From assembly GCA_054661495.1 (NCBI GenBank), contig BAAFSQ010000224.1:1-16293 (forward strand): 16,293 bases of DNA, given 5' to 3'. Below the pieces are notes generated by a model. It saw only the letters and a program-made list of their open reading frames with translations. It was not told where the DNA came from and did not search any database. Shown piece by piece: positions 1 through 16,293 of the stretch (within the stretch, counting starts at the first letter, position 1; every line of letters begins with the position of its first letter). A program made the position numbers and the translations under genes. This DNA comes from Zygophlyctis sp. KS116. Its lineage: Eukaryota; Fungi; Chytridiomycota.

Positions 1-105
1 ATGAGAATTTAGTGTTTCAGATGGCACTGATAATAAATCAGAATAACTATTGACTTAATTGACTATTGAGTGCAACACAATCACAGGAATTTTAAAAAGA
101 CAATA

Positions 106-285
106 TGATAATATCAAAGGTTCTCTAATCAAAACAGGACTCAGAGAACAATAACAAAGAACAAGGCAAAAAGAACTTTGTTGAAAAGACAAAAATAAGC
201 TACGCCACTGCTTCAACTTAAATGATCAATCCAGCATCCAAGCAATCCAGCATCCCAACTATGTGAAGCACGAGAGAGTGCAACA
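106..285 (-). repeat. Solo LTR (LTR1), related to solo LTR E; left boundary uncertain
   Basis: Ends in TGCAACA at 285. Carries CTTTGTTGAAAAGACAAAAA (176-195), identical over 20 bp to 9381-9400, plus the GGTTCT and CTACGCCAC motifs seen in other LTRs here. The left TG at 106 is a best guess. Confidence 0.55.
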
Positions 286-289
286 GTGA

Positions 290-542
290 TGTTACGAGAC
301 AAAAGCTGGATAACAATACCTGACTGGGAAATATAAGAGTTCAACAAGAATTAGAACTCAGTACACAAGATTAACAAGGAACAAGATAGATATGAACTTT
401 GTTAATTAGACAACTAAATCCTAGCCACTTTAGATCAGATATGCATCCCAAACACGTGTCCAAGCACAAAAGCAAATCAGCAGTGAGAAGCCGCTGAGGT
501 CCATTTTCAGATATTGTGTAGTATGTGGAGTGGAGTGTAACA
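290..542 (-). repeat. Solo LTR (LTR2)
   Basis: TGTTAC...GTAACA termini and the shared LTR motif CTTTGTTAATTAGACAA at 397-413. No PBS, PPT or coding sequence belongs to it. An alternative right end is 554. Confidence 0.62.
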
Positions 543-557
543 TGTGTCGTAACAATT

Positions 558-854
558 TTAAAATGGTAGACAGCGAAGATAACGCTGGATTTTTCCGGAA
601 AACTCTTTTACTTTATTTTTCTTTCGATCTCCATCATACTTTTCAGGGCGAGGAATAATCTTTGCATGAGACATTCCTCCAATTGCTTCCATGGCGTGTT
701 GATTCTGCACGATCGGTGTGGGAACTCTTGAGGCCTCCACACGCAAACGATCATTTTCCATCTCTAAACTTTGTAGCCTAGCAATCAACTCTCTAGCCTG
801 ATCAGGGCTTAAATTTGTAATATCAATATCCATCCTTATTAGTTTTTCTTTCAC
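558..854 (-). pseudogene. gag: Truncated Gag N-terminus of element A
   Basis: Starts just downstream of the PBS. A coiled-coil-like segment is followed by PRPEKYDG, the P-x-x-F/Y-x-G motif at the start of Ty3/Gypsy capsid domains. It stops at the deletion junction. Confidence 0.7.
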
Positions 855-888
855 TTTCTTCCTCTTTCTTCCAATAGTCGTAGTATTT

Positions 889-899
889 CCAAGCTACCA
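889..899 (-). promoter_or_regulatory. tRNA-type primer binding site TGGTAGCTTGG (probably initiator tRNA-Met)
   Basis: TGG lies 1 nt after the LTR-terminal CA on the minus strand. TGGTAGC matches the 3' end (GCUACCA) typical of fungal and animal initiator Met tRNAs. Confidence 0.7.
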
Positions 900-900
900 A

Positions 901-1201
901 TGAAACAATTTTAAAATCCGGGTTCTTAATAAACAATTGTTTCTTATTTTTAGCTCTCTTATTCACTCCAAAACTAATTAGGACTCAGATACAGACAAAA
1001 CACTTGGTTCTTAGTAACAATTGAGATTTATTACCTTGGTTTAGTAACAATTGAGATTTATTACAGAGAACCAAGCGTCCCTACTGATCATTTCAAGCCT
1101 CTAAAAGCACCAAGCTGCTGAGCTATGTATTATCATTCCTAGAGCTGATTCAAACCTAAAAAGAAACTCAGACCCTAAACTAAGACCTAGTTAACCTAAC
1201 A
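901..1201 (-). repeat. 5' LTR of element A
   Basis: TG...TAACA termini, adjacent PBS, CCGGGTTCTT motif shared with LTR E, and an internal ~30-bp tandem duplication. Confidence 0.72.
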
Positions 1202-1202
1202 G

Positions 1203-1412
1203 TGTTAAAGGCAGAGAAACAAGAGAGAAATTGAGATTATATAAGTGAGTTCCTTTTTGGATTAATGAACTCAGGAAACAAACAAAGAACACAAACAAGG
1301 AACTTTGTTAACAAGACAAAAGAAAACTACGCCACCTCTGTTCCATATTAGTCCAGCGATAATCCCAGCCTGTAAGCACCAAGCACCAATAATATGTGAG
1401 CAAAGCATAATA
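1203..1412 (-). repeat. 3' LTR of element B
   Basis: 210-bp copy of 4660-4870 with the PPT adjacent. Confidence 0.95.
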
Positions 1413-1415
1413 TCA

Positions 1416-1425
1416 CCCCCTCTCT
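1416..1425 (-). promoter_or_regulatory. Polypurine tract of B (AGAGAGGGGG)
   Basis: Purine run 3 nt (TGA) before the 3' LTR on the minus strand. Confidence 0.9.
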
Positions 1426-1444
1426 ATGAATAACTCTCATCAAT

Positions 1445-2035
1445 TCATACATCCTGCATAGTTTTCCCAGAGTAATAATATTCACCATCAAATTCATGAA
1501 ATCGGAACAAGTGTTCAGCATTTATAGGCAAATACTGTCCTGACATATCAGTATAACGACGTTCATCAGGTTTTTGGAGAGTATATGTTCCATTCTTCCC
1601 TTTAGCAACAATATAGAAAGGCCCAATAAATTTAAATTGAAATTTTGTTTTTGTGATTTTTTAACTTGACTACATCAACAACTTCAAAGGTTGGTTCTTT
1701 AACTCCCATTTTAACATCATATTCCATTTTCATTTTATGCGCCTTAGTAACCCTAACCCTTGGCTTTCAATCTTTGCAAGGCAGCTGCCCTGTTTTGTCC
1801 CAAAATTGCTAATTCTTTCGCGGTATAATTTGCAACATCATGAATATCATTAAAATCATAAACACTACCAGGAGGATTAATAGGTATTTCATCCCCTGGA
1901 ATTCTTGGATTTAGGCCATGAGCCAAGTAGAAAGGAGAGAAACCAGTAGCATCACTTTTGCGCGTATTCAATATCAATTCTGCCTGCGGTATAAAATGAT
2001 CCCATTTATCAACTTCGCCAGCACACAATTTAGAT
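1445..2035 (-). pseudogene. pol: Integrase C-terminal half of B (end of core + GPF module), frameshifted
   Basis: WDHFIPQAELILNTR...TGFSPFYL, then FKFIGPFYIV. Colinear with the C integrase. Confidence 0.88.
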
Positions 2036-3487
2036 TTAATTCTTCAAAACATTCTTGTGCAAACTCTGTCTTTTGATACTCCATTTTTGATTTAGTCAAT
2101 TCGAAGAGCGGTCCAGCGATACTCGAAAATCCAGGGATAAAGTCTCGGTAATAATTAGCTAGTCCAAGGAAAGATCTCATTTGTTTAACAGTTCTAGGAA
2201 ACGGCCATTTCTCTATAACCTCCAATTTAGTATCATCCATCTCGATTACATTTTTTGATAGAGAATGGCCAAGAAAGACTAGTTTGTCTACCATAAACAA
2301 GCACTTCTTTTGATTTACAATAAGCTCATATTTCTGTATCCTGGAGAAAACCTCTTTCAACAAGACCTGGTGTTCTTCCATCGTTTTAGTGTATATGAGT
2401 AAATCATCAATATAAACCAGTAAGCCTCGATCAAGCAAGTCCCCAAAGATATAATTCATGAAGGCCTGAAAAGTACCAAGTGCATTTTTCAGGCCGAACG
2501 GCATCATATTATATTGAAAATGACCATATTTGGTACGGAAAGCTGTCAAGTATTCTTTTCCTTCATGAATGCGGACTTTTGAGATCTATTTTAGAAAAAC
2601 AACATGATCCCATAGTCAGCTGTAGCATATCTTTGATTATAGGCAAAGCTGTTCGGTCTGTCTTCAATACTGAATTCAATGCACGATAGTCCACACAGAG
2701 TCTAAGTGATCCATCGATCTTCTTTACAAACATAACTGGAGAACCAGCTGGAGAGGTAGACTTACTGATCATTCCGGCCTCTAAAGCAGTTTCCAAATAC
2801 TTTCGTAAGACTTCCTCTTCTTCTTTGCTTAAGGAATAAATGGGCCCAAAAGGTGGAGATTTTCCTTCAAGTAGCTCCAAGTTTATGTCTATTCCTTCTC
2901 TATGAGGGGCTAAACCAGGGAATTCATTAACAGTGAAAACTTTGGTGAATTCTTTAATAAGATTCTTTAGGAAACATTCTCTTTTGAGTTCTAAAGAACT
3001 ATGTTCACTATCAATTAGATCTATAAAAACTTGCCTTTGGGGAACACCATCTTGAGCATCCGGTGTTCCCTTACAAAAACTTAACGTCTCATGGTATAGG
3101 TTGAATAATCAACTTGTTCAAATTCCAATTTATCATTGGGTTGACTTTTACCAGCCAGTCAAAACCGAGAATGACCGGGTGATTGGGAGACTGTACGACC
3201 AAGAAAACTAGGTTGGATTTATAATTGGAGAACTCGAGCGCACCATTTATTTTGTGAGTAATCTGTCCTGTTCCACAAGGGGTCCCATCAATAGATGTAA
3301 CTAACCAACTGCGTTCTAAGCGTTCTAGAGGCAAGTTTAACTCTTTAACAAATCCTTCATCAATAAAAGCCATCCCCATAGCACCCGAATCGATCATGAC
3401 TACGGTTTGAAAATCCATCCCTTCGTGAGAAAAACTACAGGGAAATTCTAGTAACCGTTTTCCAGACTTCTGTAGTACGTTGAGATG
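2036..3487 (-). pseudogene. pol: Protease + reverse transcriptase of B, frameshifted
   Basis: MIDSGA aspartic protease motif and ILGFDWL. RT motifs LRLCVDYRALN, MPFGLKNA, YIDD, FLGLANYYR. Confidence 0.93.
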
Positions 3488-4605
3488 TTAAGTCTTATTC
3501 TCTTCAAAATCTACAGGAATTTCCTTTGAAATATTAGTTAACTTTTCTTGCCTTATAGGGATCTCTTCTTTGATGCAATCCGAGATCCCCTTCCAAGGCG
3601 AAACCTCGGGTATAACACAAACGTACTTAGACATCTTTATATTAGATTTAAAAGGGCAGTTTGAAGACACATGAGATGGTGGAGATTCTACTACTCGTTT
3701 GCAATAGTGGCAACGCTGCTCTTCAAAACACACCTTCCGGCGTTGTTCTACATCCATTTCACGGATCTCTTGCAGTCTTTCTTGAGAATTTGAAACCATA
3801 ACTCCATTGATTGTGACTTGATCAGGAAAATCCGAAATAGATACTTTACCTATTTCCATAGGGACAACCTGAGATCTAGACTGTAAAAAGTTTGGCGAAA
3901 CATCTCTTGACATATGATTTCGAGATTGACTAAGAGTATCACGAGAACTTGTAGAGAAATTGGAACTTCTTCGATCCTGTCTGAGTCTAAACAACCGATT
4001 ATCCAAATCAACAACAGCCATAACATAAGAATCAAGATCATCAGGTAAGTCCTTATCCACCAACCGGTCTCTGATTTCATATTTCAGACCTTTTTCAAAC
4101 AAAGGTCTAGCAGAATCTGGGGATATGTCAGAACGGTACAAGAGTTCTGAGAACTTAGTCCAGTAAGACAATACAAACTGAGATTTGCCTTGTGAGAGAG
4201 ATAGAAGAGCGTCCGTAGCATTTCTTTTGGAAAAGGGGTCTGAGAATTTAGAGAAAGCTTGAGAAAACACATTCCAATCGTTCAATATTTCTGGATTTTT
4301 TCCTTGTGTGGGATTTTCAATCAATGTGACTGCCCAATCTGCAGCCCCTAACCCAATTTTCTTAGCATCTGAATCAAAAGTAGTTGGTTGCAAAGAAAAG
4401 AAATTCTGTAATCTAGCCAAAAAGACTCCATACTGATTCTTATTGCCATTAAAAGTCTGCACATAGTAGGATCACGAGTAACAGGTGCAGGCCGCTGATT
4501 AGCTTGCACTTGCAACTGTGCTAGTGCAACTAGGACCTGTTGCAGCAATCCAGGATCTATAGCTTGAGAGGCTACAGGGGTAGTAGATCTGGGGAATTCT
4601 TCCAT
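3488..4605 (-). pseudogene. gag: Gag of B (capsid + atypical zinc knuckle), frameshift near 4460
   Basis: ATG 43 nt after the PBS. Retrotransposon-gag-like LSQG...YWTKF...FEKGLK, PMEIG, and CHYC-X9-H-X4-C. Confidence 0.88.
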
Positions 4606-4647
4606 TTTTTTCTAATAAATTTCCAGGCTAGACAAGAGTATTTTAAG

Positions 4648-4657
4648 GTCTTGTTAA
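4648..4657 (-). promoter_or_regulatory. Self-priming PBS of B (TTAACAAGAC on - strand)
   Basis: Lies 2 nt from the LTR end and is a perfect 10-bp inverted repeat of LTR 4766-4775. No TGG. Confidence 0.85.
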
Positions 4658-4659
4658 AC

Positions 4660-4870
4660 TGTTACAAGGCAGAGAAACAAGAGAGAAATTGAGATTATAT
4701 AAGTGAGTTCCTTTTTGGATTAATGAACTTAGGAAACAAACAATGAACACAAACAAGGAACTTTGTTAACAAGACAAAAGAAAACTACGCCACCTCTGTT
4801 CCATATTAGTCCAGCGATAATCCCAGCCTTTAAGCACCGAGCACCAATAATATGTGAGCAAAGCATAACA
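4660..4870 (-). repeat. 5' LTR of element B
   Basis: TGTTA...TAACA, 211 bp, direct repeat of 1203-1412. Confidence 0.95.
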
Positions 4871-4873
4871 GTT

Positions 4874-5066
4874 TGTAAAATGACCGCAAAGTTCAGGTTC
4901 TTTATAAAGATAGAACAAAGTAATTAGAGAGGAGAAATCAAGGATTTCTCAGATAGTTTAACAAGTAGAAACAAACAACTTTGTTAAACAGACAAAAAAC
5001 TATTCCTAAACCACCATCCGTAAAAAGGCTGTAGGTCAAGCACATCATGTGCAGCAAAGTGTAACA
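4874..5066 (-). repeat. 3' LTR of element C
   Basis: TGTAA...GTAACA. 4959-5066 repeats at 9163-9270. PPT adjacent. The left boundary is inferred from the TG. Confidence 0.85.
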
Positions 5067-5069
5067 TCA

Positions 5070-5079
5070 CCCCCCTCCC
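5070..5079 (-). promoter_or_regulatory. Polypurine tract of C (GGGAGGGGGG)
   Basis: Purine run 3 nt (TGA) before the 3' LTR. Confidence 0.9.
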
Positions 5080-5209
5080 ATCAGACCAGAACTGCGATAA
5101 AAACCTCTGGGCAAAAATTGATTAAAAACCAGAGGAAACCGAATGTCCAGCTAAAGATCATTGGCGGTAAATAGCATATTGAATTTTGAATTGGTATTTT
5201 GAGATTTGA

Positions 5210-6608
5210 CTAATTGTCATCTTGTAAGTCATGAATCTGTCCTCCTGTGTAATAGTATTCCTCGTCGAAATCAATGAATTTATGCAAGTGGTCTGCATTC
5301 ACTGGTATATCATCTCCTGACGGGCCCGTCCATCTCCTGCCATCAGGCTTCTGTAAGAAGTATGTACCATTGCGTCCTTTTGCCACTATATAGAATGGAC
5401 CTATAAATTTAAATTGAAATTTAGTCTTAGCGTGATTTTTAAGTTTGACGTCATCTTCAACTTCAAATGATGGTTCTACTACACCCATTTTAATATCATA
5501 ATTCATTTTCATACGTTCCGCTTGAGCCTTTAGGCAGTAGAGTGCTGCTGCCCGATTCTGTCATATTTAGCCAACTCTTGAGCTGTTAAACTTGCAACAT
5601 CATCACTATTAGAGAAATCATAGAAGCCCGGGGGATTAGAGGGAATTTCATCGCCGGGAATTCTAGGCTCTATTCCGTGGGATGGATAAAACGGTGAGAA
5701 ACCGGTTTAGTCTAGTATTCAGGATAAATTCAGCTTGTGAAATATAACGTTCCCAATTGCCAACATCTCCAAAACACAGCTTAGTGAGGATTGAGTTTAA
5801 GTCTCGATGCATTCTTTCCAGATTGCCGTTTGTTCTTGGGGTATATGGGCCAGAGGGCAAATGCCGAATTTCCAAAATTTTTAGGTACTCCTGTAATACT
5901 GAATCCAAGAAAAATAAAGCTCTATCTGAGACAATTTCCAGCGGTGTCCCGAATTTACAGATGATATTTTTAAAGATACATTCTGCTACTGTTTGCGCTG
6001 ATCGGTCCTTGGTAGGTACTAGAATTACAAGTTTGGTAGCATAACACTTCGCGGTGAATAGATTTTTGAACCCATTTTTAGATTTCGGTAGGTCTTGCAA
6101 GAAGTCAATACCCCATTTAGAGAATGGCAACCCCACAGGATCATGAGTATGCAGCGGTCGATGATCAGGTCTTTCTGAACCATGAAGCTGACATATGTTG
6201 CAATTCGACTGAAACTGAATAGTATCGTTTTTCATATTAGGCCAATAGTACCTAACCTGGAGAAGAGGCAGGAGAGTGTTCGAGGCCATATGTCCCAAGG
6301 TAACATGGTATTTTTGAATTAACTCTGCCCTTTCAGAGAATGTGATATACGGTACTTCATAAACATGATAGGGTTTTACTTTCCCTGTTTATTATTCGGA
6401 ATAAGCGGTCATTTTTAAATATAAAAAACCTTGCTTCTTGATTAATCTTTCTGAGAACCTTAGGTGCCAAGACAAAGGATAACTCGCCTGTCCAAAGGAA
6501 TTGTATGAGGTTCTGAAACCAAAAAGGATCCGTACCATTGTTGCACCCCTCGAATTCCATGAATTGTTCTAAATCACCAACCACCTCATCATCTGAGGTA
6601 TCCTCCCT
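5210..6608 (-). pseudogene. pol: Integrase of C (HHCC, DDE core, GPF module, no chromodomain), several frameshifts
   Basis: GHM...YYWP...CNICQ, WGIDF, IVSDRA, TNGNLERMH, FIGPFYIV. Confidence 0.92.
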
Positions 6609-8390
6609 TCAATCCAGAGAACTTTGGTAATATGTCGCATCAAAATCCGAGTTTGCATCTACATTTTCGGAATCTGAATTTTCCACTGGGGAAACCAGGG
6701 GACCGGTACTCGTTGCAAATATATCCAATTTATCCTTACATAAGATTACTTGTTGGTTGTGAGAATTGTCGTCGCTGCATGGTCCAACTAAAGGGTGCCG
6801 ACTTAAAGAATCAGAAACAATCTGTTTAGATCCAGGGCGATAGAAGATTTTGAAATCGAAATCACTAAGAAAGAGAGACCACCTGGCTTGGCGCCTATTG
6901 AGGCTCCTAGGGTTAGAAAAGTATAATAGATTTTTGTGATCACTGTAAATTGAGAAAGGCTTTTCAGTCCCGATTAATAAATATCTCCATTCTTTCAAGG
7001 CATCTACAATAGCCAGCAGTTCTTTGTCATGAATTTCATAGTTCTGCTCTGCTGGCTGAAGTTTCTCAACTGGCTTTAAAAGTCCTGATTTCTCATCAAT
7101 TTGGCTTAGAACACCTCCAATCCTGTAATCAGACGCATCTACTTCCAAGAAAAACTCCTTGTTCTGGTCTGGATACATAAGTATTACCTCCTGTCTGAAA
7201 GCAACCTCTAATTTATTGAAGCTATCCAATGTCAATTCATCCATTTTCCATGACACATTTTCTTTCGTCAGATCTGTTAATGGTTTAGATATCGTCGAGA
7301 AATTAGAAATGAAATCACGATAATAATTCGCCAGGCCCAGAAAGGACCTCATTTCCTTACGATTTCGTGGGAAAGTCCACTCATCCAGTGCCTTCAACTT
7401 ACTTGGGTCCATTCCAATTCCTGCAGAACTTAGCGAGTGACCAAGGAAAGTTACCGACGATTTAAAGAACTCACACTTCTCTTTTTTCACCACTAGACCA
7501 TAATTTTGAACTCTTCGAAATATTTCGTTTAAGAGTTCGGAATGTCGTTCAAAATCAGAAGTATAGATTAGAATGTCATCGATATAAACTAAGACACCCC
7601 TATCAATTAAGTCACCAAAAATCTGGTTCATGAATGCTTGAAAGGTTCCAGGAGCGTTTTTCAATCCAAAAGGCATCACTAGATACTCGTAGTGACCATA
7701 TTTTGTACGAAATGCGGTCAGATACTCATTCCCTGCCTTAATTCTAACCAAGTGAAATGCGGACTTAAGATAAATTTTGCTGAAGTATTTAGAGCCACCC
7801 ACTCTCCTGAGCAAGTCCTTGATAATAGGTAAAGCTGTCCTATTTGACTGTGTAACACCATTTAGGGCCCGATAATCAACACAAAGACGTAGACTGCCAT
7901 CGTTCTTCTTAACAAACATAACGGGCGACCCTGCTGGCGATTTAGATTCCCGGATGATTCCCGCCTGACTGGCTTTATCAATGTATTTCCGTAATACAAC
8001 CTCTTCATCCTTAGATAGGGAATATAAATGCCCAAAAGGTGGAAATTTGTCCTCCAAGAGCTCTATATCCAGATCTATTCCAGGCCTGGAACTGGGCAGG
8101 TCCGGAAACTCTTTATCTTCGAACACTTCAGAATATTTTTCTAAGACCTTGCCTTTGCACGATTCGATTAAATCAATACTAGATACTTGCCTTCGAGGGC
8201 TCCTGTCTTCGATTTCAATCGAGGATCCCTTTAGTAACATATTAAAGTGAAGTCTTCCAGTCTCCCAATCTATAATCGGATTATAAAGCTTCAACCATCC
8301 CAAGCCCAAAATAATTGGTGTGTTTGGACAATCAATCACGAGGAGTTCCACAGCCTTTTCAAAATCCTCGAAGCTAAGTTCAATACGCAC
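6609..8390 (-). pseudogene. pol: Protease C-terminus, RT and RNase H of C (593-aa open segment of a broken polyprotein)
   Basis: ILGLGWL, LRLCVDYRALN, YLVMPFGLKNAPGTFQ, YIDD, VDASD, NYEIHDKELLAIV, SDHKNL, RQARW. Confidence 0.95.
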
Positions 8391-9162
8391 TTTTTCAGTT
8401 ATTATCCACTACCACATGCAGTACCATCCACGGATGTGACCCTGATAGAAGTATCTAATTTCACACAACGAAATCCCTCCTTCTCTACATAGCCGCGATC
8501 AATATAACCCATTCCCATAGCTCCGGAATCTATCATAGCGTTCGTAAATATAGTTTTATCATTAACTTTAATATCAACCTTCACGAAAAACAACAAGTTA
8601 TTTCTATCATTAACAAAGTTTATATATAGTTCTTGCCTTTGGGGGACCCCTTCTATGATTTCATCTGGGATCCCCTTCCGAGGATGGACCTCAGGATAAC
8701 GAGCCGAGTAGTCAGACTTTGTTTTATTCACTTTAAATGGGCAAGTCTGAGCAATATGAGACGGAGGAACTCCAACCACCCTTTTACAATAATGACAGCG
8801 GTGTTCCTCAAAACACACTTTTCTACGCTGTTCGGGATCCATTTTTCTTATTTCATTTAACCGCTCCAAAGAGTTAGACAGGGAGACACCATTGATCATC
8901 ACATTTTCCACCAGTCTTAACATTACCAATCTCCATAGGCTGAGGCAGATTACTAGAGTGAGATACCGAGGGGGGATTTCCATAGTACTTTGCGAAAGAA
9001 TTAGAGTTCAACGGTCCTCTTCTGTCTTGTCGCAACCGGAACAGGCAATTATCCAAATCGACAACTGCCATAACAAATCTATCCAAGTTGGCTGGCAGGT
9101 CCTTTCAACCAACCGATCTCTTATTTCATACTTAAGACCTCTTTCAAATAATGGGCGAGCAG
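8391..9162 (-). pseudogene. gag: Gag C-terminal half + protease N-terminus of C, frameshifted
   Basis: Highly similar to B gag (VMAVVDLDN, PMEIG, CHYCKRVV). MIDSGA is in the same frame as the zinc knuckle. Confidence 0.88.
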
Positions 9163-9270
9163 TAACAAGTAGAAACAAACAACTTTGTTAAACAGACAAA
9201 AAACTATTCCTTAACCACCATCCGTAAAAATGCTTAAGGTCAAGCACATCATGTGCAGCAAAGCGTAACA
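9163..9270 (-). repeat. Truncated 5' LTR of element C
   Basis: 108-bp match to 4959-5066, fused directly to mid-gag. Confidence 0.9.
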
Positions 9271-9465
9271 AAGGACTGAAAAACCGGGTTCTTTATATAG
9301 TCTTAAATCAAAAGCAATTAATTAATTCTGTACTTTCTCACTTAGAAACTCAAGCAAGAAGTCAAAGAACAAAATATAATCTTTGTTGAAAAGACAAAAA
9401 GATCCTCCTAATCCATCAACACGTTTTCTGATCAATCCAAGCCTACCAAGCATCAAAGCATAACA
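9271..9465 (-). repeat. Solo LTR E (left terminus missing or merged with the end of C's LTR)
   Basis: Ends CAAAGCATAACA, like B's LTR. Has CCGGGTTCTT and CTTTGTTGAAAAGACAAAAA motifs. Confidence 0.75.
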
Positions 9466-9470
9466 TGTTT

Positions 9471-9702
9471 TGTTGCGTCCTAGGTACTCAACTAATTGGA
9501 GGTCTTGATACCTGGTTCATGGTTAGATTTACCACAAGGTTATGGAGTTTAAGAGTAGGGGCTTTGATAGCTTGGACGCTTATGCACAAGGCTGAGTAGC
9601 TAAATCACTGATCGCTGATGCTTAGATCTTTGTACTTTTTAATACAAAGTATTTTGATTGTTACATTCTTCTTTACAGTCTGAGCTAATCCAGACCGTAA
9701 CA
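9471..9702 (+). repeat. 5' LTR of element D
   Basis: TGTT...AACA, 232 bp, repeated at 14065. Confidence 0.96.
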
Positions 9703-9704
9703 TT

Positions 9705-9715
9705 TTAAAAAGTAC
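9705..9715 (+). promoter_or_regulatory. Self-priming PBS of D (TTAAAAAGTAC)
   Basis: Lies 2 nt after the LTR and is the perfect 11-bp reverse complement of LTR 9632-9642. Confidence 0.88.
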
Positions 9716-12700
9716 CTCCAAATATTTTTGAAGTAAAATATCTACAAGTTTTAAAAAGAAAATACTAATGTCTCATTCGGATCCATCTTATACTCCGACG
9801 AGAACTTTCCAATCTGACTCGGTTGAAGTTCCGAATCAATTTGGAATGCTTCTCAATATGGTGCAATCTTTGCAGGACCAAGTTTCCGTACTATCTCAGA
9901 AAACGTACGGATCACCTGATAGATCTCCTAAGTTAGTGGTACCAGCCCCCTATGATGGCTCTGCTGAAGATTTTGACGTTTTCTGGGGTGATATACATGA
10001 TTACCTAAAGGTTAAGTCTGATTCATTTCGGACTGATTTTGCTAAAATAACTTTTGTATCTAGACTCCTGACAGGTAGTGCTAAAATTTGGTTTCAGGCC
10101 GTACGGGAACGTTCTCATTAGTTTGAAGTTCCCGAGCTGAAGGATTTCATTTTATTTTCAAATAGCTTCAAGGAGCATTTTATGAATCGGGAATCTCGAT
10201 CCCAAGCCAAGGCTAAATTGGACAAACTTAAACAGGGAAGCACTAAGATGCACAATCTCTTGGCAAATGTGGAATCTTTGGTTATACAAGCAGGATTAGA
10301 TCTTTATTCTGATTATGGTATCGAGTCTGTCATAAAAACTTTAAATCCTTACTAGATCTAAGGGACGCTTTCTTATATAATCCAACCTGGAGAACTGATT
10401 ATACACTGATGAAGAAATATCTTAAGGCAAAGGAAATGAACCGTCTGGTCTCCTTGGAAATTAATGAATTGTCTGTTAAGATCCCTGGTGATGATCCAAT
10501 GGATATAAGCAGCATCAATTCTGCTTTGTCTGTCCAATTGCCAACTAAGTGGAGCAAGCTCAATGCTGAAAATTGGAAGATACTGAAAGATGCTCTATTA
10601 AAGGTGAAGTGTTGTCTTTCTTGCAGAGATTATGTGGAATTTGGACACACACAAAACTCCACCTGCAAATTTAAATCAAAGAAATTTGAGAAAATTTTCC
10701 AAAATATACCAAATTCTGAATCGTCTTGTTTTATGAACACTTTGAAAATTCCTAATAGTAGGCCATTCTTGGTTCCGATTGAAGTTTCGGGATCATTGGG
10801 GGACGGTTTAGTGGATACAGGTGCTTTGGGAAATTTATTTATAAATGAAAAACATTTGGACAAATTCGGGGTACTTGACACTAAATTTATACCACCATTA
10901 AAGCTCATATCATTTGCAGGAAATGTAGGACAAATAGTCAATCGGAAGGTCAAATTAGAATTCAAAATTCAAAAATCTACTTTTCAAGACTATTTTATGG
11001 TATTAAATAGCTGTTCAAATGATATTATTCTTGGATTAGAGTTGCTTCAAAAACATGATACAGTAATAAATTGTCAGTCAAAATCAATCGCATTTGGTAT
11101 GAAAACATCTGTCAGTCTATCGAAACGCACTCTAGCAACCTGTATATCGCTATCTGCCATACAGTCTTTGTCGAGTTCCGAGGAGTTACCTATATATTCT
11201 TATATAGTCCGTTTACCGGATTCAAAAAACGTTTCTTCTGTTCACGCGACTCCTGGTAAAATAAACTCACTACCACTGTTCTTGAAAAGTTACGCAGATG
11301 TGTTTAATTTGGAAAAACTAAAAGTCCTGCCTACTTATAATGATGCACATGCTATGCCAAAAGAACTTATTCCCGGATCCGTTACTCCTACGTCTGCACC
11401 CTACAAAATTTCAGATAAGGAGGAGACAGCTCTCAGAACTGCACTCCTAGAAGGACTTAAATCTGGAATAATATCTATTTCACAGGCTCCAGGAGGTTGC
11501 CCGATTCTTTTTGTTAAAAAACCTGATGGTACCTTGAGGCTTTGTGTTGACTATAGATCCTTAAACAAGTTAACAAGGGATACACAGGCCATCCTTCCAA
11601 ATAAAGAAGCTATTCTAAGCAATCTTTCACCATCTAAAGATCCAATTTATTCAAAAATTGATTTAAAAGGAGCTTTTCACCAGTTGAGAATAAAAATAGG
11701 AGATGAAGAAAAAACCACATTTGTTACCAAATTTGGAAAATACCAGTATAATGTGATTCCTTTTGGGTGCAAAAATGCTCCGGGTCATTTCCAGAAAGTG
11801 ATGGATAGGATATTTTCTGATTTGATTGGGAAAGGAATTTTTGTTTACCTTGATGATATCTTGATATATAAACCTGACAAGGAAATAGAAATATTTTGAA
11901 AAAAGTGCTTGAACTTCTACAAAAAAATAATTTAGTGGCCAACTTGGAGAAATGCTTGTTTGAAGTTTCTGAGGTGGAATTTCTCGGATTCCAACTTTCA
12001 AAAAAAGGATTAAGTATGCAAAATGGCAAAGTAGATTCGATTTTACAGTTTAAAGAGCCCAAAAACGTCAAATCTCTCCAACGTTTTTTAGGCCTTTGTA
12101 ACTTTTATAGATCATTCATCAAACAGTATTCTGATAAAGCGAGGCCCCTCTTTGATCTGATAAAAAAAGAAAATGAATTTATTTGGTGCAAGAAGGCTGA
12201 AGTGGCATTTAAGCAACTAAAGGAAAGCTTTAACGCAAAAAACTTCTTATTGATACCTAACAGAAGAAAACAATTTATATTATATACTGATTGTTCCAAG
12301 AAAGCTTTGGCTGGGGCTCTACATCAGATTGATCATACAGGAATGGAACGGCCTGTCTCCTTTTTTAGCAGGACTCTATCAGCCGCGGAACAAAATTATG
12401 CAATGTATGATAAAGAAATGCTTTGGATCAAATCTTCTTTACAACATTGAAGTCATCTACTTATCCAAACTGAAGTCCCTGTTAAGATTTTTTGCGACCA
12501 TCGTAATCTTACGTATTTCAAAAAACCCCAGTTACTAAATGAAAGACAAGCTCGATGGCAGGAATTTCTCGCAGACTATAACTTTGAAGTCAATTAAATA
12601 CCGGGTGAAAGGATTGTGGTTGCAGATTGTTTGTCTAGACCAGAGGGTCCGAAATTGATACAAAAAAAGTTTTTTATTTCTCGCTCACTCTGCTCAATAC

Positions 12701-12991
12701 AAAATGAATTAGAAACTCTTCAATCTGTTTCTGCAGATTCTCTATTCGATCTCTCAATAATCAGAACAAACATGCCAGAATCTTCCTCAGAGCTGAACGC
12801 AATCGAAGACCCTTCAAAGGCTACGTTAAAAAATTGGCCAGTATTCATGTATTATGTGCTGCGAGGAAAAGAGCTACCGATATCTCTTAACAAAAAATTT
12901 AAAAGTCTTGTTAAGATGAATAAAAAACACATGATAATTAAAGATGGCAAACTATTGCGTAGAATATCCTATTTGAATCAAGCTTATTATG

Positions 12992-13053
12992 TCTGTTCCA
13001 GAAGAACTTCGTGAAACAAAAATCTGTTCCAGAAGAACTTCGTGAAACAAAAA
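12992..13053 (+). repeat. Perfect 31-bp tandem duplication within D integrase
   Basis: TCTGTTCCAGAAGAACTTCGTGAAACAAAAA x2. Confidence 0.95.
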
Positions 13054-14051
13054 TTAATGAACTACATCTGACACTAGGTCATCTAGTATCAGACTCGGTT
13101 TTCGATTCTTTAAGGACCCGCTGTTGGTGGCCCTAACAACTAAAAGATTTGAAAGATTTCATCGAAAAATGTTCTATATGCCAAAGAAACCAAATAAATA
13201 AGACAAGTGGACAACCTGAAGTTCCTACACCTCCAGTGGGCATCCCGTTCTATCGTTGGAGTCTGGATTTCATCCAAGATTTGCCAACTACTGATGGTTG
13301 CAGAGGCAGTGAGAAATAGGAACGCAAAAACAGTCGCTGCTTTTTTATTTCGATTAATGTTGAAGTTTGGGGCTCCTCAAGAAATTATAACTGACCGTGC
13401 AAGCTGTTTTATGGGATATGTTATGAAAGAATACTTGGCAATTCAGCATTTTCCTACAACTTCTTATCACCCAAGATATTAGGAATGGTTGAGAGAGTAA
13501 ATGGAGTCTTAGGAGCAATACTGACTAAAATGACTTTAGGAACTGGTAAAAAATGGGATCAATTTGTCGAGCCAGCTGTTTTTGTTTTAAATGCTAGAAC
13601 ACATTCTGTTACAGGATACTCTCATTTCTATTTAGTTTATGGAATAAATCCTCGTTTGCCAGGAGATATCTTCCCTCCATGTATATTTTCAAGAAAATCC
13701 GATAATGATCTCTCACTACAGACTTATCGTTAATTAACCAGGTTGGGACAGCATAGAGCTCTTGCACTCAAAAACTCTCAGGAAAATGCTAAGAAATATG
13801 CAGCTATAGATTCTGATTTTAAACAATTTCAAGTTGGGGAATTCGTTAAGTTAAGGAATTTTACAAAGCTAAAACTGCAGTTCAGGTGGATTGGGCCGTT
13901 TATCATCGAAGCCATAGGCCCTCACAATACTTACTATCTAAAAAAGGCTGATGGATCTGTTGTCAAAAACGCTTATAATGGTGTGCATTTAGGGCCATGG
14001 AAAAGCTTGTTTGAATTAAAACGCTCAAATGCATCTTTAGAATCTACAGCC

Positions 14052-14061
14052 GGAGAGGGGG
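14052..14061 (+). promoter_or_regulatory. Polypurine tract of D (GGAGAGGGGG)
   Basis: Purine run 3 nt (TAC) before the 3' LTR. Confidence 0.9.
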
Positions 14062-14064
14062 TAC

Positions 14065-14285
14065 TGTTGCGTCCTGGGTACTCAACTAATTGGAGGTCTT
14101 GATACCTGGTTCATGGTTAGATTTACCACAAGGTTATGGAGTTTAAGAGTAGGGGCTTTGATAGCTTGGACGCTTATGCACAAGGCTGAGAAGCTAAATC
14201 ACTGATCGCTGATGCTTAGATCTTTGTACTTTTTAATACAAAGTATTTTGGTTGTTACATTCTTCTTTACATCCAGACCGTAACA
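14065..14285 (+). repeat. 3' LTR of element D
   Basis: 221-bp copy of 9471-9702. Confidence 0.96.
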
Positions 14286-14289
14286 GTTT

Positions 14290-14503
14290 TGTTAAGCGGT
14301 AATCGCTTATTACAATATTATACAGTTATTATTAGGATATTATTACTATATAAGAGTTAGCAAGTTATAACGTTCCTAATCTCGGAATATTCCTTTGTAG
14401 TAAATATCATAAAGATATTTATTATTAAGGTAAAATACATAAAGATATTTATTATTAAGATACTTGAGTATTCTCAGTTTACATATCCAGTCTACGACTG
14501 ACA
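14290..14503 (+). repeat. 5' LTR of element F
   Basis: TGTTA...TGACA with TATATAA at 14347-14353, followed by the PBS and gag ATG. The partner LTR is outside the window. Confidence 0.8.
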
Positions 14504-14505
14504 GA

Positions 14506-14516
14506 ATATTTACTAC
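14506..14516 (+). promoter_or_regulatory. Self-priming PBS of F (ATATTTACTAC)
   Basis: Lies 2 nt after the LTR and is the perfect 11-bp reverse complement of LTR 14397-14407. Confidence 0.87.
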
Positions 14517-14518
14517 CT

Positions 14519-16293
14519 ATGTATAACAACGAAGCTAATATGCGTGCTCAATCTCCTAGAGAGGAACCTACAATAAACTCACTAGCCTCAAGAACTGATT
14601 TGATGGAGAGAATGATGCATGACATGGTTCAGATGATGCGTGAACTTAAAACAAACCATACAATTGTAGAGGTGAAGAATTCAAAAATGCCGGATGTTTC
14701 AATGTACTGTGGTAATTCTGACGATTTCTCCTCCTTTGAAGTCCTAGTTGGTGCCTTTTTCCGTAACCAGCCTAAAAGATTCTCAACAGAATGCACAAAA
14801 ACCCTACATTGGTACGCGTTTGTCTGGTAGTGCTTTAAAATGGTTTACTTCTTTTCAGATTCAGGAGAGTAAAATGCAGTCTTCTAAATCTTTTGAAAGC
14901 TTTGGCCTTTCGCAATCCTAATGAAAATGATTTGGCAGAAAACAAATGACAAAAACTAAAACAAGGGAACAAAGCCATTGCAACCTTTATTACAGAATTT
15001 GAAACTGTTCGCGCTTTAACTACTTCTGTAGATGACCGGATTGACATCTTTCTAAGAGCACTTAGCCCAAATGTGCGTAAAAATGTGTTTGATGATGCTC
15101 GTCACAAACCTGCCCTTAAGACAGATTATCTTCTGCTCCAATCTTGTCTTTTGCAGGGTGTGGAAAATGAAGAGGTTTGCTCAAACTCACTGAAAGATAA
15201 TGTTATTCCAATGGATTTGTCAATGAATGTAATGCAAGGAAAACCTCAGTTTAAAAAGATGCCGATGGGAAAATGGTTAAAGTTCAAAGAATTCTGTCTG
15301 GAGTTAGGAGTTTGTCCTTACTGCATGGAATATGAGTACAGTTCTAGTTGCCCAAAAAATAAACCGTCTAAAGAATATATGCTTTCTGTTATCGCTGAGT
15401 CCGAACTCACTGTGGCTATTTCAATTGAAAACAGGAGTTTAAAGGCGTTAATTGATACAGGTGCTCAAGGAAGCGCATTTATTCGAGCTGATTTGGCCAA
15501 CCTTTTAAAATTACGTACTCGAACAAGAACACCTATTAAACTACGTGCATTTAATGGCTTAGAAGTCGAAACTATCACAACAGAAACAGAACCTATTGAT
15601 TGCATAATTGATAAATTTCATTATTCGATGGTATTTCTTATTGCAAATCACATGGTCGCTGACGTAATTTTGGGTTTTGATTGGCTCGGTAAGCAAGGAT
15701 TGTTGATTGATTGCCGCCAAAAAAGACTGATCAAATCATCTACATCTAAAAATTCAAATTGGACACCAAAATTACCATCTGATACTTTCATGTTGTGCGT
15801 TATTGAACAATCCGAAGAATTAATTCAAGAACTTCCAGAATTTATGAAGTCGTATGAAACTGTTTTCGATCTGAAACAGGCGGACAAGTTACCCCCCTAT
15901 ACCTCTGAACATGCATTTCCTATCGATATTGAGGAGGGGAAGACAGTTCCACAGAGTTTTCCTTACAAACTTTCACTTAAGGAGGAGCAAGCGCTTCGAA
16001 AAGAAATTGAAAAAGGATTGGAGAGTGGGAAAATCTCACCATCCACTGCATTGGGGTCTTGTCCTGTTATGTTCGTCAAGAAGCCTGATAAGTCTTTAAG
16101 GATGTGTATAGACTACAGAAAATTAAATGAAATTACAAAATCTTACCAGGCAATACTTCCGAATATAGAGGATATTCTGGCTTCTTTGGGATCGGATAAT
16201 GATCTCCCTCCTTTGTATTCGAAATTGGATTTGAAGGGTGCCTTTAATCTTTTAAGAATAAAAAGGGGATGTGAGCCTCTGACTTCTTTCATA
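14519..16293 (+). pseudogene. pol: Gag-Pol of F: broken gag, then an open frame 14950-16293 (gag C-term, PR, RT start) missing from the ORF track because it runs off the window
   Basis: Manual translation of frame 1: LKQGNK...FITEF, PMDLS, LIDTGA (DTG 15454-15462), ILGFDWL, LRMCIDYRKLN, SKLDLKGAF. In-frame TGA at 14947-14949 and a frameshift near 14805. Confidence 0.9.

Follow-up and report, generated by a model that had tools for sequence, protein, structure and literature searches.

How do retrotransposons of different families come to stand in a row, each beginning where its neighbor ends? This question is raised by a contig of the chytrid Zygophlyctis sp. KS116. The window that we analyzed, namely, the entire contig C224 (GenBank BAAFSQ010000224.1; 16,293 bp), carries an array of at least nine copies of Ty3/Gypsy retrotransposons joined end to end, with 0 to 5 nucleotides (nt) between the copies. 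The array probably results from repeated position-specific integration at one gene transcribed by RNA polymerase III (Pol III), most likely a tRNA gene that would lie immediately outside the contig on its left side.

From left to right, the array comprises LTR(-1), where LTR stands for long terminal repeat, followed by unit 0, GTGA, unit 1, TGTGT, element A, G, element B, GTT, element C, solo LTR E (which abuts C without any spacer), TGTTT, element D, GTTT, and element F (Table 1). An earlier note, made from the letters of the window, had listed seven junctions between an LTR end and an LTR start, 0 to 5 nt apart, and all seven were recovered: ACA-GTGA-TGT (286 to 289), ACA-TGTGT-cGT (543 to 547), ACA-G-TGT (1202), ACA-GTT-TGT (4871 to 4873), ACA-AAGG (9270/9271), ACA-TGTTT-TGT (9466 to 9470), and ACA-GTTT-TGT (14286 to 14289). 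An eighth LTR-LTR junction was detected at 77/78. The note had described eight LTR units. The stacking by LTR ends stood, but the equivalence of the units did not, the array being composed of three damaged two-LTR elements, the remnant A, four solo LTRs, and element F, truncated where the contig stops. Element D is bordered on both sides by GTTT, a target duplication that the note had recognized, and element A is bordered by GTGT (544 to 547 and 1202 to 1205), the right copy taking in the first TGT of the B LTR. The claim that no element sits within internal sequence was also borne out: gag-pol is colinear, no nested element was found in the ~13 kb of internal sequence, and for each internal region the alignment to intact relatives on sister contigs is colinear throughout. 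Since LTR termini plus a few nucleotides represent ~1% of the array, seven to eight random hits on LTR termini are excluded. The spacers do resemble one another, as had been claimed, but the likeness is specific to each array (CATA in C328, TGAT in C344 and C167, and AAAT in C369), and the idea of a universal GT-rich motif was not retained. Array-specific spacers are expected if each array stems from one target site.

The nature of the target was indicated by tRNA genes located on other contigs. The tRNA set contained 64 places, including 62 detected by Rfam (2 of these also by ARAGORN) and 2 detected by ARAGORN only, and 80 to 140 nt of upstream sequence were examined for each gene. In 16 of the 64 tRNA genes, the mature 5′ end is preceded, at 4 to 11 nt, by an LTR terminus (...TAACA or ...GACA), and several of these LTRs match one another or LTRs on other contigs. 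Contigs entering an LTR upstream of a tRNA gene stop 81 to 87 nt from the gene, ~77 nt into the repeat, and the fact that many contigs end in this manner indicates that the LTRs at tRNA genes are repeats. Unoccupied tRNA genes display a TATA-like box near position -30, often followed by a GTGCAATTT-like motif, and the insertions fall 21 to 28 nt downstream of the native position of this box.

Three loci show the target duplication together with both flanks. On contig C328, the tRNA-Met gene is bordered by 8 nt ending in CATA, followed by A-like element 1 (100% identity between LTRs), CATA, D-like element 2 (99.5%), CATA, and a third LTR. The three occurrences of CATA indicate three uses of a single 4-nt target, and the copy adjoining the tRNA-Met gene is the youngest. 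On C167, 6 nt plus TGAT separate the tRNA-Asn gene from a D-like element with identical LTRs, which is followed by another TGAT, with which an older minus-strand LTR begins. On C43, a 223-nt solo LTR bordered by AACA on each side lies between a tRNA-Lys(UUU) gene and the native promoter and thus parts the gene from its own promoter. At a further locus (C309), 9 nt separate the 3′ LTR of an A-like element from the tRNA gene that it precedes. With respect to the tRNA gene, A-like elements are co-oriented (C328 and C309) and D-like elements are divergent (C167 and C328). A general orientation rule was rejected, since an element of C349 with an A-type primer-binding site (PBS) is divergent; any such rule is family specific at most.

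End-to-end stacking is not restricted to the window. A genome search with the reverse transcriptase (RT) of element C returned at least 74 scored copies among 225 candidates, with identities of 32 to 71%, most of them alone on contigs of ~5 kb, and 12 larger contigs were examined. Stacking recurs on at least 8 other contigs, and nearly every resolvable element end on the 12 contigs adjoins an LTR end, a tRNA gene, or a tRNA-type promoter. Two elements of C344 are separated by TGAT, an element of C369 is flanked by AAAT on both sides between an LTR end and an LTR, and three units of C308 are spaced by AAA and CAA. Perfect 4-nt duplications were found in nine cases (A, D, and seven insertions on other contigs), identifying these as integrase events.

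New copies often cut within the last 1 to 9 nt of a resident LTR. Element 1 of C330 has the duplication CCTT; E ends with ...CAGTCCTT on one side of this element and CCTT plus AACA is found on the other side, indicating that the last four nucleotides of E were split off. A D-like element of C397 has the duplication AGGA, with TGTTA plus AGGA on the far side and AGGACTG... on the near side, and a second D-like variant adjoins E in the same manner on C576. Four separate copies of E are cut at positions 5 to 9 from the end. The true end of E is TGTTAAGGACTG..., and, in the window, element C stands where a cut after TGTT would fall. At least four other copies of E share the truncation seen in the window wherever another element abuts that end. 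The GTGT duplication of A, which takes in the TGT of B, marks a further cut of this type within the window. Cuts within the last 1 to 9 nt account for both the short spacers and the missing TGTT of E: short or zero spacers are what remains when a 4-nt staggered cut overlaps the terminal nucleotides of an older LTR.

In this genome, many divergent Ty3/Gypsy families devoid of a chromodomain apparently insert, with a 4-nt duplication, ~2 to 11 nt upstream of the mature tRNA 5′ end. This interval lies around the Pol III start site, as for Ty3 of yeast and Tj1 of S. japonicus, and TFIIIB or another Pol III component may provide the tether. We propose that each newcomer would land between the gene and the previous copy, displacing the latter outward, and the spacer left behind would be the duplicated 4 nt, shifted by a wobble of a few nucleotides. 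A cut falling farther out, in the terminal nucleotides of the resident LTR, would leave a spacer of 0 to 3 nt, or the last 4 to 5 nt of the resident LTR would end up beyond the newcomer. The earlier note had proposed either the end of a resident LTR or a host landmark as the target; the 16 occupied tRNA genes and the loci of C328, C167, and C43 favor the landmark, and targeting of LTR termini is not needed. The core inference of the note, namely, that several different families return again and again to one target a few base pairs wide and that the array grows stepwise, is supported. No full insertion history is claimed for the window.

The left end of the window provides a candidate for the gene in question. 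LTR(-1) runs past the contig end, and positions 1 to 77 have no other copy in the assembly. It belongs to the family of LTRs located directly upstream of the tRNA-Lys genes of C43 and C819. Contig C819 (1,981 bp) ends 107 nt into the 3′ part of an LTR located 8 nt upstream of its tRNA-Lys gene. The start of C224 and the tip of C819 are compatible in position and orientation, with a gap of ~51 nt as measured on the C43 copy, and neither the C224 tip nor the C819 tip overlaps any other contig. Judging from these sequence relationships, C819, with its tRNA-Lys gene, may join the left end of the window. The tRNA-Lys(UUU) genes of C43 (1085 to 1400) and C819 (1794 to 1981) have related LTRs (73% identical) 5 and 8 nt upstream, respectively, and either the two genes were hit in parallel by families related to each other or a gene was duplicated long ago together with its LTR.

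Several observations weigh against integration at a tRNA gene as the origin of the array. Neither a tRNA gene nor any Rfam family was detected in the 16.3-kb window, and no extension of either contig end was obtained, so that the adjacency of the array to its landmark is inferred. Searches of the genome itself with both ends, two exact-word scans of metagenome contigs, and a look-up of contigs carrying the C RT did not yield a longer version of the contig. B, C, E, and unit 1 lack matching duplications; for instance, B is flanked by ACAG and GTTT and unit 1 by GTGA and TGTG. The sequence TGTT plus AAGG, expected to the left of C, is absent from the window. The cuts in E at 5 to 9 nt, if measured from the tRNA gene alone, require an offset at the edge of the range of 4 to 11 nt. 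With the gene at the left, D, located between E and F, is predicted to be older than B and C, yet the LTRs of D are the most similar (1.4% divergence), the differences not being significant. Apart from these points, junction bridging was checked for positions 8500 to 14450 with the Logan k=31 contigs of four public runs, and none of the contigs listed bridges a junction, so that the junctions of the window rest on the assembly.

One continuous chain of duplications across all units was considered, with the gene placed at either the left or the right, and was rejected: it fits F, D, E, and A on B but fails at C-E, B-C, and unit 1. The unmatched flanks of B, C, E, and unit 1 could be due to a chimeric path through E or to recombination between copies, the 5′ end of C being rearranged. 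An insertion order based on LTR divergence was likewise abandoned, since the values for B (2.4%), C (4.6%), and D (1.4%) are statistically indistinguishable.

The main alternative, possible if unlikely, is that integration recognizes an LTR terminus, or a junction of two LTRs, as such, either because integrase prefers ...ACA-N(0-5)-TGT... or because a TATA or promoter mimic in the LTR end, ~25 to 33 nt from the terminus, positions TBP or TFIIIB. Under this explanation, arrays could grow at any junction, even far from tRNA genes. D and element 2 of C328 sit exactly in the 4- to 5-nt spacer between two LTRs, and D looks young although it is located in the middle of the array. The cuts made by different families in the four copies of E are located 24 to 25 nt downstream of the TATATAAAG motif of E, which matches the distance between the TATA-like box and the insertions at native tRNA genes, and the ends of several LTRs next to tRNA genes are similar to the native upstream motif. 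However, single insertions occur at tRNA genes in the absence of an LTR partner (C43 and the older element of C167), with flanks other than ACA and TGT. The TATA geometry also fails in several cases, the distance being 38 nt for A in B and 33 nt on C167, and no TATA is present in the third LTR of C328. Integration at a landmark yields stacking without an extra assumption.

In its stronger form, LTR ends, with a TATA-like box and, in one family, GTGnnATTT at the native distance, would be promoter mimics that replace the displaced tRNA promoter and re-create the Pol III start-site target at or within their own terminus, a proposal that we consider improbable. If true, mimicry would make the LTR end a self-renewing landing pad, stacks could extend away from the gene, and targeting of LTR termini would be literally true. 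The weight test of promoter mimicry was weak, with mean scores of -3.1 for occupied genes, +1.5 for native genes, and -6 for controls. Mimicry as a general property was discarded: the fixed-register matrix, based on 39 empty tRNA upstream regions, has a low information content, and a single LTR family is native-like. One LTR family, ending in TTTAT..GAAAGTGGAATTTAACA, is found upstream of tRNA genes at C339:9882, C1162:892, C365:8709, C550:4188, and C309:10858. Together with a spacer of 5 to 9 nt, the GAAAGTGGAATTTAACA end places a TATA-like box and GTGnnATTT at the distance seen in unoccupied genes and, on the basis of these motifs, may substitute for the displaced promoter.

It is very improbable that the contig is a chimeric concatenation in which the junctions or their order are not genomic. 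The genome (12.7 Mb over 1,175 contigs) is a fragmented short-read assembly that breaks ~77 nt into repeats and looks like a k=77 de Bruijn product. E (195 nt, at least four copies) and the F LTR both exceed this word length, and the unit order across them could be chimeric. The lack of a Logan contig spanning a junction, among those listed, fits this possibility, and an origin of C-E and E-D from two separate loci would account for the absence of TGTTAAGG to the left of C. However, different families share merely 5 to 7 nt of terminal sequence, making false joins between families implausible, and an assembler cannot produce the matched duplications of D and A or the split-off LTR ends of C330 and C397. 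The architecture recurs on at least eight other contigs. The public runs containing the window stretch are freshwater metagenomes and one organism-labeled run. The Logan contigs start or stop exactly at 9271, 9466, 9471, and 14290, i.e., at LTR ends, indicating that independent assemblies see repeat boundaries there. Each junction is real at the word level, and a chimeric path could alter the neighbors but not the end-to-end nature of every junction.

Untargeted insertion into a transposon-rich safe haven, combined with selective removal of insertions elsewhere and later trimming to an end-to-end order, is scarcely credible. In its favor, selection against genic insertions is expected to be strong in a compact 12.7-Mb genome, and several units lacking duplications and carrying internal deletions reveal that recombination and deletion acted here. 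However, internal nesting would be equally harmless and is absent from ~13 kb, trimming cannot generate base-exact junctions with intact duplications (D, A, and seven others), and the distance between LTR end and tRNA gene is fixed at 4 to 11 nt.

The protein domains identify the class of the elements. Pfam domains in the window follow the order Retrotrans_gag, RVP_2, RVT_1, RT_RNaseH, Integrase_H2C2, and rve; the domains of B and C are encoded by the minus strand and those of D and F by the plus strand. The same order (gag, protease, RT, RNase H, and integrase) was found in six intact polyproteins of 724 to 1,451 amino acids encoded by sister contigs. The LTR pairs of B, C, and D are 95 to 99% identical, have TGT...ACA ends, and are associated with a polypurine tract (PPT; GAGAGGGGGTGA-like) beside the 3′ LTR. 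No chromodomain (PF00385; E ≤ 0.001) was detected in the six polyproteins of stacked elements or in the open reading frames of the window. The elements are Ty3/Gypsy retrotransposons (Metaviridae) that are not chromoviruses.

In budding yeast, fission yeast, and social amoebae, retrotransposons that settle at Pol III genes are the textbook case of a safe-haven strategy. The closest parallel to the integration at tRNA genes favored here is Tj1, a Ty3/Gypsy element of S. japonicus that integrates 5 to 11 bp upstream of mature tRNA 5′ ends in one orientation (Guo, Singh and Levin 2015; PMC4600332). The interval is similar to the 4 to 11 nt found in the chytrid, and the clustering of many Gypsy families in a single genome is a likeness to Tj1. 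Targeting was demonstrated for Tj1 by de novo integration, whereas it is deduced from resident copies in the chytrid. Base-pair-joined stacks, which the chytrid has, are not described in the Tj1 report as read (PMC4600332). Some chytrid families have an initiator-tRNA-type PBS, in contrast to the self-priming of Tj1. The Tj1 report raises the problem of promoter cut-off for tRNA genes with upstream TATA boxes (PMC4600332). Chytrid tRNA genes apparently have an upstream TATA-like box that is separated from the gene by the insertion (C43), a difference from Tj1.

Ty3 of S. cerevisiae integrates at Pol III start sites via TFIIIB (PMC5911963), and the Ty3 intasome bound to TFIIIB has been visualized by cryo-electron microscopy (bioRxiv 10.1101/2021.07.27.453949). 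The chytrid elements resemble Ty3 in belonging to Gypsy elements without a chromodomain, in their precision of a few base pairs at the Pol III start, and in the presence of solo LTRs beside tRNA genes. Ty3 is primed by tRNA-iMet, as the A-like family apparently is, judging from its PBS. Target duplications are 5 bp long for Ty3, unlike those of 4 nt in the nine chytrid cases. Ty3 inserts in both orientations, and yeast has one Ty3 family with few copies and no long multifamily stacks. The TFIIIB tether is proven for Ty3 and is proposed here for the chytrid elements. DGLT-A of Dictyostelium, another LTR retrotransposon of a compact genome, integrates ~13 to 33 bp upstream of tRNA genes in either orientation (PMC5006619 and PMC6101501). 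Its window is broader than that of the chytrid elements, which are found within 4 to 11 nt and are stacked to the base pair. tRNA-gene targeting arose convergently in several lineages (PMC5006619 and PMC6101501).

The literature searched contained no report of Pol III targeting in a chytrid. Base-exact, multifamily stacks of at least nine units are a striking consequence of a known type of targeting rather than a new mechanism. Dozens of Gypsy families, with RT identities of merely 35 to 70% between them, appear to use one target of a few base pairs in a 12.7-Mb genome. The resulting stacks record insertion order and, given a long-read assembly, would offer a natural time series of transposable element invasions at single tRNA genes. 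They would also supply a large set of different integrases facing one targeting task, which is useful for comparing tethering mechanisms. Because the insertions cut off the apparent TATA-like box, how tRNA expression survives becomes a question for this system as well.

Table 1. Units and spacers of the retrotransposon array in the 16,293-bp window
Feature	Coordinates	Strand	Evidence or detail
LTR(-1), first 77 nt, U3 start TGTTGCAC...	1-77	-	Matches the start of the C43 solo LTR (223 nt) at 77.6% identity
Unit 0, solo LTR	78-285	-	83-84% identity over 94-285 to both LTRs of the small C733 element
Spacer GTGA	286-289		Sequence
Unit 1, solo LTR, TGTTACG...GTGTAACA	290-542	-	Sequence
Spacer TGTGT	543-547		Final GTGT is the left copy of the A duplication
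Element A, internally deleted remnant	548-1201	-	Matches the LTR of C328 element 1 at 96% identity over 133 nt; PBS identical
Element B	1203-4870	-	LTRs 1203-1412 and 4661-4870; PPT 1413-1424
Spacer GTT	4871-4873		Sequence
Element C	4874-9270	-	3′ LTR 4874-5066; PPT 5067-5079
Solo LTR E, 195 nt	9271-9465	-	Lacks its own outer TGTT; at least 4 copies in the genome
Spacer TGTTT	9466-9470		Final GTTT is the left copy of the D duplication
Element D	9471-14285	+	LTRs 9471-9703 and 14065-14285; PBS region from 9704; PPT 14052-14064
Spacer GTTT	14286-14289		Right copy of the D duplication
Element F	14290-16293	+	5′ LTR ~14290-14504, gag, protease, RT start; cut by contig end

The individual units are damaged to various extents. 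Unit 0 begins with CAATCACAGG and the 5′ LTR of its relative on C733 with TGTTGCAAGG; in comparison to its C733 relatives, unit 0 lacks the outer ~5 nt at the 77/78 junction. The two LTRs of the unit 0 family on C733 (2,493 bp) are only ~1.8 kb apart, the element probably being small and non-autonomous or heavily deleted, and its outer LTR end adjoins another LTR (...GTGTAACA/C/TTATGCAAGG). The motif AACTTTGTTAA..GACAA is common to unit 1, unit 0, and the LTRs of B, C, and E. Element A retains ~19 nt of the start of the 3′ LTR, the 5′ part of gag, the PBS (885 to 898), and the 5′ LTR (~899 to 1201). Read on the strand of the element, the A-like PBS is TGGTAGCTTGG, which complements the 3′ end of the C328 tRNA-Met. 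On C328, the A-like element (PBS at ~5080 to 5094) lies directly upstream of the very tRNA-Met gene (136 to 216) that matches its PBS.

The LTRs of B differ by 5 mismatches in 209 positions; the element has gag and RT and has lost RNase H and most of the integrase. RT, RNase H, and integrase are all retained in element C. Of its 5′ LTR, only the outer 108 nt (9163 to 9270) survive, with 5 mismatches in 108 positions in comparison to 4959 to 5066; the inner 85 nt have been lost along with the PBS and the beginning of gag. In D, gag, protease, RT, RNase H, and integrase are colinear with many frame breaks, and the integrase region is split into at least five open reading frame pieces. The LTRs of D differ by 3 mismatches in 221 positions plus an 11-nt indel. 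Nearly identical LTRs despite a fragmented integrase (12450 to 14064) suggest either a defective copy mobilized in trans or LTRs homogenized by gene conversion. The indel corresponds to the stretch gtctgagctaa (9678 to 9688) of the 5′ LTR; the 3′ LTR has probably lost it, since D-like LTRs of C397 and C576 carry related versions.

Two further contigs contain related sequences. On C92 (32244 to 32330), a 58-nt start of an F-like LTR is followed by TAAACA and then by GTTGAAATGGCCGAG, whose sequence resembles the 5′ part of a class II tRNA gene not included in the Rfam list. On C349 (~1290 to 1325), the telomere-repeat-like sequence CCTAACCTAACCCTA connects a truncated D-like LTR with the gag region of a different element.

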